A DNA stretch of 63,897 bases, filler included, from Hyphochytrium catenoides (GCA_900088475.1; 7 parts of 7 records of this genome joined end to end with filler, not necessarily neighbours in it), one strand, 5' to 3'; counted from the whole stretch's first letter, positions 4,920 to 22,539 are shown. Made by a program: numbers and translations. Notes: generated from the letters alone by a model not told the origin.

Positions 4920-5192
4920 GTATAATATATGGTCTCAAACAAAGTCCCCTGCAAGGTAATAAAGTCCTCGACGGATATCTGCGTGATCATGGTTTTGAAC
5001 CCAGTCTCTGCGAGCCATGCGTCTACATTCGCAAATCCAACGATGGTTCAGCAATCATCTCCGCCTTCGTTGATGACACACCGATAATTCCTTCAGACAC
5101 CACCAAAGTCACTCAAGTCAAGCAGCTGCTCGCGAATCGTTTCGATGTCAGGGACCTGGGAGAATTGAAATATTTCTTGGGTTTGGAGTTGT
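4920..5192 (+). repeat. Ectopic ~273-bp copy of RT segment 7131-7403
   Basis: Nearly identical to 7131-7403; one substitution seen. Confidence 0.92.
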
Positions 5193-8100
5193 ATCACACC
5201 TAGATACAAAGCCAAGGTGCACTATCTCTCGGCACACGCGTCGGTACGTTGTCCTACTCAAAAGGAACAAGTCAGAAGCCCGCAATCATAGGTACACACC
5301 ACGTCGGAAACAACCTGGACGAGCCACCAATACACAAACCCCAACAAGGTCAGTTACCATTTGGCATCGACGCCTGGGGCACCTCAACATTCCATACCTC
5401 AGGAAACTAGCCAAAGTCGCTGAAGGCAGTCAGATCAATCATGAGGACGCTCAGTTCTGCTCCGGATTGCATTTCTAGGCAAACTCACACGCCGTAAGTT
5501 TCCCAAGAAAGCGACTCGCAGAGCTTAAAGACCTCTTCTGGAACTAATTCACTCCGATGTGGGAGTTGTCAATACCCTTAGCCTAGGAGGACACCGCTAC
5601 TACGTTGTCTTCGTAGATGATCACACCGGGAGGACCTTTCTCTACTTGATTCTACTTGATGAAATCCAAAGATGAAGTGATAGTCACTCGGACACGTTTG
5701 AAGTAACGGAACGACAAACCGGATGTAAATTCCATAAAATTCGAAGTATCGAGGAGGAGAGTACTGCTCAGAAGCCATGAAGGAGTACTGTAAAACACGT
5801 GGAATAGTACATGAACTCACAGCCCCGTAGTCACCAGCACAAAATGGCGTCGCTGAACGTAACCAGCGTGGTCTTGTGGAATCCGCTCCCTGCATGCTCT
5901 ACGCTGCAAAACTTCCCTTATCGTTTTGCGGAGAAGCCCTTTTAAAACAGCAGCTCACCTTGGAAACGTATATCTCACCTCAGCACTCAACAAGGACAAC
6001 ACACCCTATATAATGTGAGAGGGTAAAAACCCTGACTTGAGTCATCTGTGTCCTTGGTTGTCAAGCTTATGGTCTCATCACTGACCAGGAACGGACCAAG
6101 ATGGATGCTAAGGCTAAGTACTATGTCTTCGTGGGTTATGCAGATCATTCAAAAGCGTTATATAATCCAGAGACAAACAGAATTATCGAAAGGCGTGATG
6201 TCGCATTCAACGGGAACCAGTATGGGTACGTCGAAACATCACCTCCAGCCGAGAACGTTGACATACTCTTTGGGATACTAAATGAAGCCCACGCGCGACT
6301 CCAGCTAGAGTGGAAGATCCAAAAACCCAACTAATAGATGGGCCCCCACGTCGAAGTAACAACTGACATATTAGATGCAGCCAACCTTGACAACACCGAG
6401 GGGAGAGATTTCGGGGTACGGAAGACGACACCGAAGATCAAGAAGAGATCTTACCTTCACGAAATACATCATACACTCCCGTCCACTAGTGAGAAATCTA
6501 CACTGGATACACTACCCCTGATAGATTCATTCCAAAGTAGATTAGACCGCCAAGTGTTAATCCCCGGAGGAGAACCCTCTCACTCTCCACCTCTTGCCAT
6601 TCACCCTTCTCGTATCCGACTGTTACAAAGCGCCTACAACAGGAAGATTCCATCTCCCGTGCGGTTAACAACACTGAGAGACAACATCTGAACCGCGAAC
6701 CATCAAAGAGGCACTAAGTAGACCTGACGCCGAAGAATGGAGCGCTGCTATAGCTAGCGAGTTGGCCTCCATGGAACAACATGATGTCTGGGAGTTTGCT
6801 GAACGGCCACCGGACGCCAATGTGATCGGGTTTTCCACCCCAAGTATAACAGCGATGGCAGCCTCAACCGCTACAAAGCTCGTCTGGTAGTCCAAGGATA
6901 CAACCAGAAGTTTGGAGTTGAATACAGTGAAGTTTTTGCACCTGTCGCCAGTTATGAGTCAGTGCGATGTCTTCTATCCTTGGCAGCCACATATGATCTC
7001 GAGGTCCACCACGTTGACATCACAACAGCCTTTCTCCATGACAACTGGGAAGAGACGATAGATAAGCGTCAGCCTCCTGGCTTCGAGCAACCTGGAGCGA
7101 AGAAGAACATGGTCTGCAAGCTAAAGCGGAGTATAATATATGGTCTCAAACAAAGTCCCCTGCAAGGTAATAAAGTCCTCGACGGATATCTGCGTGATCA
7201 TGGTTTTGAACCCAGTCTCTGCGAGCCATGCGTCTACATTCGCAAATCCAACGATGGTTCAGCAATCATCTCCGCCTTCGTTGATGACACACTGATAATT
7301 CCTTCAGACACCACCAAAGTCACTCAAGTCAAGCAGCTGCTCGCGAATCGTTTCGATGTCAGGGACCTGGGAGAATTGAAATATTTCTTGGGTTTGGAGT
7401 TGTTCCTAGAGACCGACCAAATCGCAGGATATACCTTAGACAAACGAGATATATCCAAGACGTACTGAAGAAATTTCATATGGAGGAATCCAACCCAACC
7501 AACCCCCCCCCCAGCTGTGGCAGGGGAGCATCTTCCCATGGCATGCGAGCTCCCAACGTTGAGTCCGGCCGACGAGCAGGATATTTATTACAAATTCCGT
7601 ACCGCAATGCTGTTGGAGCACATACTACACCTCCTGGTTGCGATTCGACCAGACATAGCCTACGCAGTAGAGTCAGTAAGTTAACGTATGGCCAACTTCC
7701 GGACTGTCCACTGGAAAGCGGTCAAGAGAATTTTTCGATACTTGAAGGGTAATAGCAGCTACGCACTATGTCTAGGGGGAGCGACGGTCACAACCTCAAG
7801 CTCTTTGCCGATGCTGACTGGCCTAATCACATTCAGTCGTAAGTCGGTCACTGGATACTTTATGACTCTTGGCACCGGTGCTTTCGCTTGGAAATGCAAA
7901 TAGCAAGACATTGTATCATCTTCGACAACAGGAGCTGAGTGCATCTCTTTGTGGACAGGATCCAAACACGCAGAACATATAACCTTTTCCTTGAGTGAAA
8001 TAAAACCCGCAACCAGGAGCTGTAGAAGCATTCCAAGACAACAAAATAAAGCACCATCACTATATGTCAAATGCCAAGACCAAAGTCCAAATACGTCGAT

Positions 8101-9703: not shown

Positions 9704-9949
9704 TGTTGAACTGTAATCGACGCTGGAACCAAAAAGTGTACAGCGCTCGACGCAGAGGGGAAAACCCCTGATATATAAACAAATCGGAGATTAGTTAAAA
9801 GAGTACGTTTGGTGTACGCTCCGAGCGATTTAACTCGGGCAAAATATATTGAGCCATTCGTTCTGAGACCACGGATGATCATCAAAGTTCCATTATTTGA
9901 ATCTAGAGGTACAGAGTTCTCTACATTCCGGGTGGAGTGTTGAACTGTG
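9704..9949 (+). mobile_element. tRNA-TRIM family 1, deletion derivative
   Basis: 5' part of the LTR fused to PBS TGGTGTACGCTCCG (9810-9823), then internal region, PPT and the first 12 bp of the 3' LTR (from 9938). Homologous to 21612-22242. Confidence 0.88.
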
Positions 9950-10199
9950 TGTTAGATTTTATCATTGGATGGTGAGGCACTTAAAATAATATTGGGGGGT
10001 GTCTGGATATGCCGGAGCGAGAAAAGTTTTGTACGCTCCGGGATTCGAACCTAGGACCTCTGTTTTTGATGCCGACACCCGAACCAGTATGCACCATACA
10101 CCAAACGTACACTTGACTAATCTCCGTTTTTGTTTATATACCAGGGGTTCTTCCCCTCTGCGTCGTCTGTTGTACACGTTTCCCTGTATACCCTCAACA
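9950..10199 (-). mobile_element. tRNA-TRIM family 1 LTR (variant 5' end)
   Basis: Reverse complement of the 21612-21867 LTR; TGTTGA...CTAACA; no TSD seen. Confidence 0.88.
10030..10110 (-). ncRNA. tRNA-like RNA in TRIM1 LTR (best-preserved copy)
   Basis: Acceptor stem GTACGTT/AGCGTAC plus A, A-box-like TGGTGTATGG, B box GGTTCGAATCC, upstream TATA, downstream TTTT; anticodon arm is non-canonical. Confidence 0.8.
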
Positions 10200-10264
10200 A
10201 ATGGCTTGACGTGTTGAATGTTCAGCTCTACCCTTCATTTCAGGAAGTTCGACCCGCGGGAAGG

Positions 10265-20438: not shown

Positions 20439-21128
20439 GTGAATCCCTTACCCTAGCTTCTATCCAGCAGGCTGCAGCGAAGGCAGAAGAAATGGTTGCT
20501 AAACAGCGGATGCTCCAGTCACATTATTACTGGAGATCAATCACTCTTTCCCTCTTTCGTACCTGTTGACCCTCTTCCTCTCTTTACCTCTGGCAACCGG
20601 CCAGGTTGCCGTGGGAAAGAAAGCATACTTATCCCTGCTGACAATAAAGCTACCACTACTCCTCTCTAGCTGCCGAGTGTGCATTAATCCTCCTCATGCA
20701 CCAGGCTTTCCCAAGCATCTTCTCTCTATTGGGCAATACATCCAAGAACTCTCCAGATGAAGCAGTGTTATTTACCTCAAATGGAGCTCCAACGAACAAT
20801 CCGGGCAAGATCAGCTGACATCAAGATCAAGTATCAAGATCCAAATCGGAACTTGGAAGACCACCCATCCCTGGACCCGAGGAACAACCAGCTTCAAGGT
20901 GAACTTTAACTGAGACTTATCTTCAAGTTGAACTTCAACTTAGACAACTTCAAGTTGAACTTCATCTTGTGCGACTTCAAATTCACCTTAGGCTGTTGTG
21001 TGATGCAATGCTCGTTGTCAGTAATCACTCTCTATACACACCTAGCTCTCAGGGGCATAGTCGTTCCCGGTATAAACTGTGTTATGGGTGAAGAGAGATG
21101 CGAGGAGAATTCCCTGATCTCAAGAATG

Positions 21129-21452
21129 TGTTGGATTTGTATGGGATGATTGGACAATGTCATTAGCTGAGAGTGCTCTACTTATAAGCCCAACTGGGGT
21201 CCCATAATCTAGAGCTATCTGACTATGCCACTATTCCGAATAAACCCTAAGATATCCTGTCATAGAGAAGTCCCTGTCTAGAACAGTCAGTCTTGAAGGT
21301 ATTCCGGGGTGATGACCATAAGCTATAGATATAAACAGGGACATTTCGCTTGCTTCATATCTCGGCTTCTACTGAGAGTTTGGAGCTGAAACTTGGGTTA
21401 GTTAAGCTTGCCAGCTTGTAGTCCACTATAGCTGTGCCCTCAGACTCCAACA
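21129..21452 (-). mobile_element. Solo LTR family A
   Basis: 5-bp TSD GAATG. Confidence 0.92.
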
Positions 21453-21710
21453 GAATGAGCAAAGGACTTTGTTAGGAAGAGGATGGGACGAGGCGCGGAT
21501 TGATCAGCAGAGCACCAAGAGAGACATTCATAGTCATTTCACAGATTATTCATCAGCAAGTCCCTTTGTTATCGATTCATCTACACGTCATCAACATGTA
21601 CCTCTGCTAAATGTTGAACTGTGATTGACGCTGAAGCCAAAAAGTGTACAGCGGACGACGCAGAGGGGAAGAACCCCTGGTATAAAAACAAAACCGAGAT
21701 TAGTTAAAGT

Positions 21711-21791
21711 GTACGTTTGGTGTACGGTGCATACTGGTTAGGGTGTCGGCATCAAAGACAGAGGTCCTGGGTTCGAATCCCGGAGCGTAGA
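21711..21791 (+). ncRNA. tRNA-like RNA in the 5' LTR of TRIM1
   Basis: Acceptor, D and T arms; TATAAAAA at about -30; TTTT downstream. Confidence 0.78.
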
Positions 21792-22087
21792 AAACTTTTC
21801 TCCGGTATATCCAGACATCCCCCAATATTAGTTCAAAGTGCTCACCATCCAATGATAAAATCTAACATGGTGTACGCTCAGAGCGATTCAACTCGGGCAA
21901 TATATTGAGTAATTCGGTTCTGTGACCACGGATGACCATCACAGTTCCATTTGAATCTAGAGCTTACAGAGTTCTCTAGTTTCCGGGGGAGTGTTGAACT
22001 GTGATCGACGCTGAAACCAAAAAGTGTGCAGCGGACGACGCAGAGGGAAAAACCCTGGTTATAAACAAAACCGAGATTAGTTATGGT

Positions 22088-22166
22088 GTACGTTTGGTAT
22101 GGTGCATACTGGTTAGGGTGTCGGCATCAAAGACAGAGGTCCTGGGTTCGAATCCCGGAGCGTACA
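22088..22166 (+). ncRNA. tRNA-like RNA in the 3' LTR of TRIM1
   Basis: GTACGTT...CTGGG-TTCGAAT-CCCGG-AGCGTAC-A followed by AAACTTTT. Confidence 0.78.
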
Positions 22167-22539
22167 AAACTTTTCTCCGGTATATCCAGACATCCCCCAA
22201 TATTAATACAAAGTGCTCACCATCCAATGATAAAATCTAACACTAAATTTCATCATAGGCAACTTCAACTTCAACTCTAAGTAACTTTCGGACAAGACAG
22301 ACCCCCACCCGATAACAGAAGGGATTGAAAATTTTCGAAGGTTCCAAATTTTCAGCCCAATTATTGCCGGAATATTTACAAAATGTTCAAAGATAATTGC
22401 AAGCAAATTTTGAACTTATCGATAATCTCGGCATAGTTATTGGGGCTTTTCAAAGTTTGGAGAAAAGTTGAAGGTGAAGCTGTACCGAATATAGGGAAGG
22501 GGAAGAGGCAAGGGCAGAACCCCCCATCTCTGCGCCATG

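Follow-up and report, generated by a model that had tools for sequence, protein, structure and literature searches.

Reverse transcription of LTR retroelements is on record as being primed by the 3' end of a host tRNA, by an internal piece of a host tRNA, or, as in Tf1, by the element's own 5' RNA end. A small element in the genome assembly of Hyphochytrium catenoides (GCA_900088475.1) raises the question of whether an LTR retroelement may also carry the gene for its own primer, which, if true, would make an element-borne, private tRNA-like primer a fourth strategy. The element lies at 21612-22242 of the window, the whole stretch of 63,897 nucleotides, filler included, that was analysed here. 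An earlier note had read it as a TRIM in which each LTR holds a tRNA-like unit and the PBS is complementary to this unit plus CCA, and this structural reading proved correct. The note had gone on to interpret the unit as a private primer; of this, the complementarity and, within the assembly, the private nature of the sequence are borne out. On balance, and with reserve, we favour the interpretation that the LTR unit would serve as the family's own reverse-transcription primer, replacing a borrowed host tRNA.

General features of the element and its family

The element is a complete, non-coding TRIM of 631 bp, and all of its features described below lie on the plus strand. Its two direct LTRs, of 256 bp (5' LTR, 21612-21867) and 251 bp (3' LTR, 21992-22242), are 93% identical and have TG..CA termini, both starting with TGTTG and finishing with AACA. 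The same five bases, CTAAA, form the left (21607-21611) and right (22243-22247) TSD. The 124-bp internal region (21868-21991) contains no ORF and is strongly conserved among 27-28 copies. It opens with the putative PBS TGGTGTACGCTCAG (21868-21881; family form ...CTCCG), which was assigned by sequence complementarity and is flush with the 5' LTR. An imperfect T-arm complement at 21882-21897, recognised by alignment and duplex energy, adjoins it as either a second PBS segment or a relic. The PPT, GGGGGAG (21985-21991), abuts the 3' LTR. The motif formed by GGGGGAG and TGTTGA occurs 51 times in the genome, both in the TRIM family and in other LTR families. The short length (below about 1 kb), the non-coding sequence, the direct LTRs, the PBS, the PPT, and the TSD are those that define a TRIM, and the complete 631-bp element with TSD CTAAA that had been claimed is indeed present.

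The family occupies at least 60 places in the 61-Mb assembly, and a DNA run of the same organism confirmed a high-copy repeat. Perfect 5-bp TSDs flank three copies (CTAAA for the copy at 21612, AGAAG, and CGTAG), indicating mobility through insertion by an integrase. In four complete copies, the two LTRs share 90-97% identity; these insertions are therefore not recent, and the family may be extinct. As for a sister family, the genome yielded one diverged LTR only (C3723, 69% identical), which is single copy and without PBS. No autonomous partner was identified, and the sole coding remnant in the window is a Copia reverse-transcriptase fragment at 6962-7468.

A second, rearranged family copy is located at 9704-10200. 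LTR positions 1-115 (9704-9818) are here fused to a PBS with the exact family 14-mer (9810-9823); the 5' LTR stops at about unit position 10 and is joined via TGGTGTA, which is common to the unit A box and the PBS. The internal part extends to 9937 and is followed, past the PPT, by 12 nt of LTR start and by an inverted LTR (9950-10181), whose unit lies on the minus strand (10030-10110). This copy looks like the product of a template switch or of a nested insertion.

The tRNA-like unit in each LTR

Each LTR of the TRIM contains one tRNA-like unit, of 81 nt in the 5' LTR (21711-21791) and 79 nt in the 3' LTR (22088-22166). A TATA-like box at LTR positions 69-76 (21681-21688 and 22060-22067), 23-30 nt 5' of the unit, is kept in the LTRs of the family. 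A TTTT run, a candidate weak Pol III terminator, starts 5 nt past the discriminator (21796-21799 and 22171-22174). The B box, GGTTCGAATCC, has the perfect GGTTCRAATCC form. The TATA, A and B boxes, and TTTT previously claimed for the LTR units were therefore all found, with the qualification that the A box is only A-box-like (TGGTGTATGG), its initial 7 bases being those of the A box of host tRNA-Gln. The 3' end described for the unit is present in the 3'-LTR unit, which ends in GGAGCGTACA, and is mutated to GCGTAGA in the 5'-LTR unit of this copy.

The unit is not a canonical tRNA, having no covariance-model match and no normal anticodon arm. When the unit alone was compared with the Rfam tRNA model (RF00005, 29 bits), zero matches were obtained at E values up to 10. 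The T arm alone was recognised by Rfam, as a fragment of other models, and its match to the mascRNA model RF01684 was weak and partial (12.4 bits). ARAGORN calls the 3'-LTR unit alone in this TRIM copy (22087-22167), as "tRNA-???" with a 4-base anticodon, and gives the unit of the second copy (10030-10110) the same designation, also with a 4-base anticodon. In the predicted fold of the family sequence, an acceptor stem of 7 bp, one of them G.U, stacks on a T arm of 5 bp whose loop has 7 nt. By this fold, the unit corresponds to a tRNA "top half"; its D and anticodon regions are degenerate. A T5-T7 run is found behind 9 of the 10 host tRNA genes examined, whereas the unit has T4 only; termination at this run may be leaky, in which case a short RNA and read-through products could both arise.

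The unit and host tRNA-Gln have identical T arms (GGGTTCAAATCCCGG) and identical A-box starts (TGGTGTA). The acceptor stems differ on both strands (GTACGTT/AGCGTAC-A in the unit versus GGTTCTA/TAGAACC-T in host tRNA-Gln), and that of the unit still pairs. An acceptor stem that differs and yet pairs would fit selection for a processable stem with a private 3' end.

Complementarity between the PBS and the unit

The family PBS, TGGTGTACGCTCCG, is a 14/14 complement of the unit 3' end CGGAGCGTACA followed by a non-templated CCA. The exact 14-mer occurs at 17 of the 25 LTR/PBS junctions in the genome, and 27 aligned internal regions agree with it. The PBS match put forward in the earlier note is complete (14/14) in the copy with its PBS at 9810; in the copy at 21612, it amounts to 12 exact bases, one mismatch, and then a G. 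TGG alone is possible by chance (1 in 64), and the chance expectation for the 11 PBS bases past TGG is about 4^-11. Past the discriminator, the LTR reads AAAC, not CCA. The TGG of the PBS is therefore unmatched by the LTR as encoded, which fits a CCA-tailed partner.

The one G.U pair of the acceptor stem indicates which strand the PBS follows. Acceptor position 6 is T (GTACGTT) in 85 of the 86 family units retrieved with the acceptor-pair pattern, the 86th being a partial match. At the corresponding position, the PBS has C in the copy at 21612, in the copy at 9810, and at 23 of the 25 junctions. The PBS thus complements the 3' strand of the acceptor stem and is not a copy of its 5' strand, as had been stated. 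Conservation was measured on majority-rule profiles of the LTR and the internal part. Within the family, no variation is seen in the acceptor 3' strand or in the PBS, and since neither partner varies among the propagated lineages, covariation between PBS and stem is uninformative.

Search for another primer in the genome

Exhaustive pattern searches were performed on the assembly, which comprises 4759 contigs. The T loop (TTCRA) followed by 7 N and AGCGTACA gave 90 matches (control 4), consisting of LTR units or fragments of the family and one plain chance string. The acceptor-pair pattern, in which a 5' strand able to pair (wobble allowed) is followed by 55-85 N and AGCGTACA, gave 93 matches (control 7), namely 86 LTR units and 7 strings without tRNA features. 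Relaxing the pattern at position 66 (not A) gave 7 matches against 8 in the control, 4 of them mutated family units, and relaxing it at position 67 (not G) gave 23 against 49, with 2 mutated family units. The sole position-67 match with a tRNA-like T arm, on C3798 (TTCGAATCCTGCTTCGTACA), was found on examination not to be a tRNA. The 10-mer GGAGCGTACA has 185 occurrences, which are explained by units, PBS copies, and a chance level of 64. The PBS 12-mer has 30 matches (control 2), all on family-carrying contigs; those examined are family junctions, and among them the PBS is shared with no other element.

No host tRNA gene ending in AGCGTACA, or merely carrying CGTACA behind a T loop, was retrieved from the assembly by these patterns, nor was a gene encoding ...GAGCGTACACCA. 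A host tRNA that matches the PBS equally well, the check proposed in the earlier note, is thus absent from the genome-wide searches, and the PBS is confined to the family. Judged from these patterns, a PBS-matching RNA could arise in the assembly from the LTR unit alone, once CCA has been added. Two scans of JGI metagenome contigs by sequence pattern gave no relatives of the family.

We regard it as unlikely that a conventional host tRNA is, or was, the primer, with the likeness between unit and PBS due to descent of the unit from that tRNA, as could have happened if a SINE-like sequence inserted into an ancestral LTR. Insertion of a SINE2 into the LTR has been proposed as the origin of Helenus (Kojima, 2024; PMC10886601). 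With its 4759 contigs, the assembly is fragmented and may lack a host tRNA gene, and the T-arm complement beside the PBS, with its CCGAG/CTCGG stem, could stem from an older primer. However, four independent pattern searches found no such tRNA gene, and tRNA genes are normally multi-copy, so that all copies would need to be missing. The 22-mer that spans the T arm and acceptor end is also absent from the JGI metagenome contigs. Moreover, decay has affected every part of the unit but the acceptor stem and T arm, and a perfect match of its last 11 bases to the PBS has survived, which would not be expected of a promoter-only relic under neutral drift.

Sequence adjoining the PBS

The sequence adjacent to the PBS resembles the complement of the whole unit T arm, with agreement at 26 of 29 aligned bases and 3 gaps. 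Including this T-arm extension, the duplex has a predicted energy of -49.7 kcal/mol, versus -28.3 kcal/mol for the 14-mer alone. The T-arm complement corresponds to a different, fully paired version of the T stem (CCGAG/CTCGG), and the G/A polymorphism of the unit T loop is not mirrored in it. PBS positions 15-18 read AGCG and are mismatched, the complement of the unit being GGAT. Such a mismatch speaks against copying of the retroviral type, in which 18 nt taken from a unit primer in every cycle should have homogenised these positions. The premise that the PBS is re-copied from the primer in each cycle is the retroviral rule and has to be qualified here, where positions 15-18 do not follow the unit.

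Either copying stops sooner, or the PBS is inherited from the template and its complementarity is kept by selection. For Ty1, inheritance of the PBS from the template was reported by Lauermann and Boeke (1994). With such inheritance, the argument that the PBS equals the primer sequence becomes weaker, and the absence of a host tRNA, even for the first 9 nt, stands.

Three copies, L093 (G000:C4384:460533), L045 (C948), and L104 (C982), have lost exactly A15 and/or C17, the bases that separate the PBS-adjacent segment from the unit complement. Through such loss, the C4384 copy has a 20-nt match to the unit complement. The losses, which are few events spotted post hoc, are suggestive of occasional copying from the unit RNA, possibly as patch repair.

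The extended likeness has a bearing on whether the complementarity is a historical by-product. The internal start would then be an old, inverted 3' half of a unit, placed there by a single aberrant reverse transcription or recombination event, in a dead family that was primed otherwise. A likeness reaching about 30 nt into the T arm exceeds what a normal PBS needs and would be accommodated by such an event, as would a T-arm extension that does not track the unit polymorphism; the copies are old, and rearranged copies that join PBS to unit exist. We nevertheless consider this origin decidedly unlikely. The block opens with TGG exactly at the LTR border, and this TGG is not LTR-encoded. The initial 14 nt are perfect and the remainder has decayed, which is the pattern of selection on a working PBS, and no alternative PBS is visible.

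Break points at the unit 3' end

Five LTR copies break within LTR positions 180-185, at or just past the discriminator (position 180), in a sample that was centred on this site and is biased, the break points having been spotted post hoc. In L066 (G000:C2516:1435-1620), a fragment comprising LTR 1-180 was inserted alone with a 4-5 bp TSD, (A)ATGG, and the empty paralogous site L107 (C1162) proves that this insertion was separate. LTR 1-180 is followed by CCA, with no clean TSD, in L048 (C1131), and LTR 1-181 is followed by a new LTR in L130 (C3148:970-1281). In L082 (C3699), an LTR end is joined to an inverted LTR starting at position 184. L074 (C3117) is a complex palindromic copy, with a junction that resembles the unit plus CCA (one mismatch) plus inverted U5. 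These breaks may reflect nucleic-acid ends that once lay at the tRNA-processing site.

The CCA after the truncated LTR in C2516 was considered as a fossil of CCA addition and rejected, the empty C1162 site showing that the TGG is target duplication. The CCA in C1131 is ambiguous in this respect.

Ends at this position would be expected if the element primed itself from its genomic RNA, a scheme to which we assign little probability. RNase Z would cut the unit within a long transcript, and the new 3' end, with or without CCA, would pair with the PBS in cis or on a partner RNA, Tf1-like in spirit. The complement lies just 76 nt 5' of the PBS on the same RNA, a Pol II transcript directed by the TATA at -30 would begin at the unit, and several LTR copies end within five bases of the discriminator, among them the LTR 1-180 inserted with its own 4-5 bp TSD, which suggests a nucleic-acid end there. 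The cluster of end points is post hoc and comes from a biased sample, however; in the one resolved case, the CCA past the truncated LTR is target sequence and not a tail; and a template cut at position 180 loses the R region needed for the first strand transfer. It is likewise a slim prospect that the unit would be R region, 3'-end processing signal, and primer at once. The RNase Z-cut, CCA-tailed 3' end of the genome would then prime the PBS of the same RNA or of a partner RNA, and the LTR copies ending near the discriminator would be fossils of such ends.

Proposed primer mechanism

For a private primer encoded by the LTR, we infer transcription, processing, CCA addition, packaging, and priming of the unit RNA from the sequence. 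Every LTR, solo LTRs included, would carry a small tRNA-like gene with the A-box-like TGGTGTATGG, the perfect B box, and a TATA 5' of it. The unit transcript would be made by Pol III through the internal boxes, or be excised from a longer, TATA-driven element RNA. It would retain the top half of a tRNA, with the 7-bp acceptor stem (one G.U) on the 5-bp T arm and a TTCRAAT loop. RNase P and RNase Z would trim this RNA, and CCA would then be added. Acceptor/T-arm minihelices are substrates of RNase P, RNase Z, and the CCA-adding enzyme, as are tRNA-like RNAs, for example mascRNA. The matured unit RNA, ...CGGAGCGTACA-CCA, would end in ...GGAGCGTACACCA and would anneal to the 14-nt PBS immediately next to the 5' LTR, and it would probably pair also with the adjacent, imperfect T-arm complement, like the bipartite PBS of Ty1. 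Extension would be carried out by a reverse transcriptase supplied in trans, probably of Copia type, to judge by the TGTTG...CA ends and the 5-bp TSD; a Copia-type helper has likewise been proposed for fungal Helenus.

Several observations count against a primer role. The lack of an Rfam tRNA match and the degenerate D and anticodon regions make processing of the unit an assumption. The T4 run is shorter than the T5-T7 of the host, the T-loop G/A polymorphism is unmirrored beside the PBS, and no autonomous partner has been identified. A complementarity of this kind cannot distinguish a primer from an inhibitor, and tRNA fragments are said to control LTR elements through the PBS. It is nonetheless very improbable that the unit is a regulator whose 3' fragments block the family PBS, or whose pairing in cis masks it, since an element whose two LTRs both encoded an inhibitor of it could hardly have spread, with TSDs, to at least 60 places, and since it would still require a separate primer, of which the assembly has none.

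Comparison with known systems

The TRIM is a Helenus-type (TRIMp3) non-autonomous LTR retrotransposon, and the variant with complementarity between LTR and PBS is new. Like Helenus, it is short and non-coding, with a tRNA-derived sequence containing box A and box B in each LTR, a PBS, a PPT, and a 5-bp TSD. Fungal Helenus families also have a 5-bp TSD and are thought to be mobilised by Copia (PMC10886601). The earlier note had rightly stated that Helenus LTRs contain tRNA-like sequence; no PBS complementarity is reported there by the describer. The PBS of every Helenus family was assigned to the 3' end or the anticodon loop of a host tRNA, complementarity between the tRNA-like LTR sequence and the PBS was found in no family, and the tRNA-like sequence was concluded not to contribute to initiation (Kojima, 2024; PMC10886601). 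Unlike in Helenus, the unit and PBS of the TRIM have 14/14 complementarity, CCA included, and the PBS is assignable to no host tRNA in the assembly, only the LTR unit fitting it. Its LTR (255 bp) is longer than the fungal LTR sequences looked at in the supplementary files of that paper.

Eight family strings of 10-12 nt had zero matches in the supplementary sequences of Kojima (2024), where line breaks could hide some. A ninth string, a 9-mer, matched unrelated internal sequences only, and no identity with a described Helenus family was found in these supplementary sequence files (PMC10886601). No report of an element-encoded primer was found in the literature.

Among other systems, the Cassandra TRIMs of plants carry a 5S RNA gene with promoter and terminator in the LTR. 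They share with this element a Pol III-type small-RNA gene in each LTR of a TRIM; unlike the unit described here, the small RNA of Cassandra is 5S-like and unrelated to the PBS. mascRNA, from MALAT1, is likewise a tRNA-like fold and not a tRNA; RNase P and RNase Z excise it, and it acquires a CCA end. The unit differs from it in that homology does not go past the T arm, and mascRNA is without a link to reverse transcription. Tf1 is primed by the 11 nt with which its mRNA begins, once RNase H has set them free. Tf1 is described as self-priming independently of tRNA (PMC5371799), and a primer of element origin, not from a host tRNA gene, would be common to both. Unlike in Tf1, the complement in the TRIM is the 3' end of a tRNA-like fold, and its PBS opens with TGG, as for a CCA-tailed RNA. 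The complement lies at LTR 170-180, away from a likely transcript start as judged by the TATA at LTR 69-76. Ty1 and Ty3 have a bipartite PBS, the second segment of which pairs with the T arm of the primer (PMC5371799). The TRIM is like Ty1/Copia-type priming in its short PBS at the LTR border, its nearby segment able to pair with a T arm, and its 5-bp TSD. The primer of Ty1 is the host initiator tRNA-Met, whereas the partner of the TRIM PBS is element-encoded.

If the unit is a private primer, the tRNA-derived sequence of Helenus-type LTRs would do more than act as a promoter. Exactly such complementarity was sought, and not found, by the describer of Helenus. Every solo LTR could go on feeding primer to the family, and the PBS of a non-autonomous element would be freed from the host tRNA repertoire and from host defences based on tRNA fragments.

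Neighbouring repeats

A second, unrelated tRNA-derived repeat family was encountered at L110-L112 and L115-L117 (G000:C1752, C2251, C2708, C3799, C3979, and C4245). Its unit, about 75 nt long, contains GGTTCGAATCCCGGC and is bordered by conserved flanks with sequence like TACATGTAAA(A)CAGATAGGTTTAC. The family looks SINE- or MITE-like and may be part of the source of the 1710 tRNA candidates in the genome.

A solo LTR of another family (TGTTGGATTTG...GACTCCAACA) with TSD GAATG lies at 21129-21452, 155 bp upstream of the TRIM. Elsewhere (at about 10260 on the minus strand, and in L130), the end of this family is followed by CCTTCCCGC(G/A)G(G/C)TCGAAC, which looks like a PBS complementary to the T-arm region of a tRNA, without TGG. 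The TRIM is enclosed by a larger repeat (20994-21120 and 21458-21606), which is also found on further contigs, C1131 and C3723 among them. The surrounding 30 kb is a mosaic of nested LTR-type repeats, many of them in inverted pairs. Two 273-nt stretches, 4920-5192 and 7131-7403, are 100% identical and 2.2 kb apart. One of them overlaps the Copia reverse-transcriptase fragment at 6962-7468 (RVT_2, E 1.5e-36), and the pair represents either a recent duplication or an assembly artefact.
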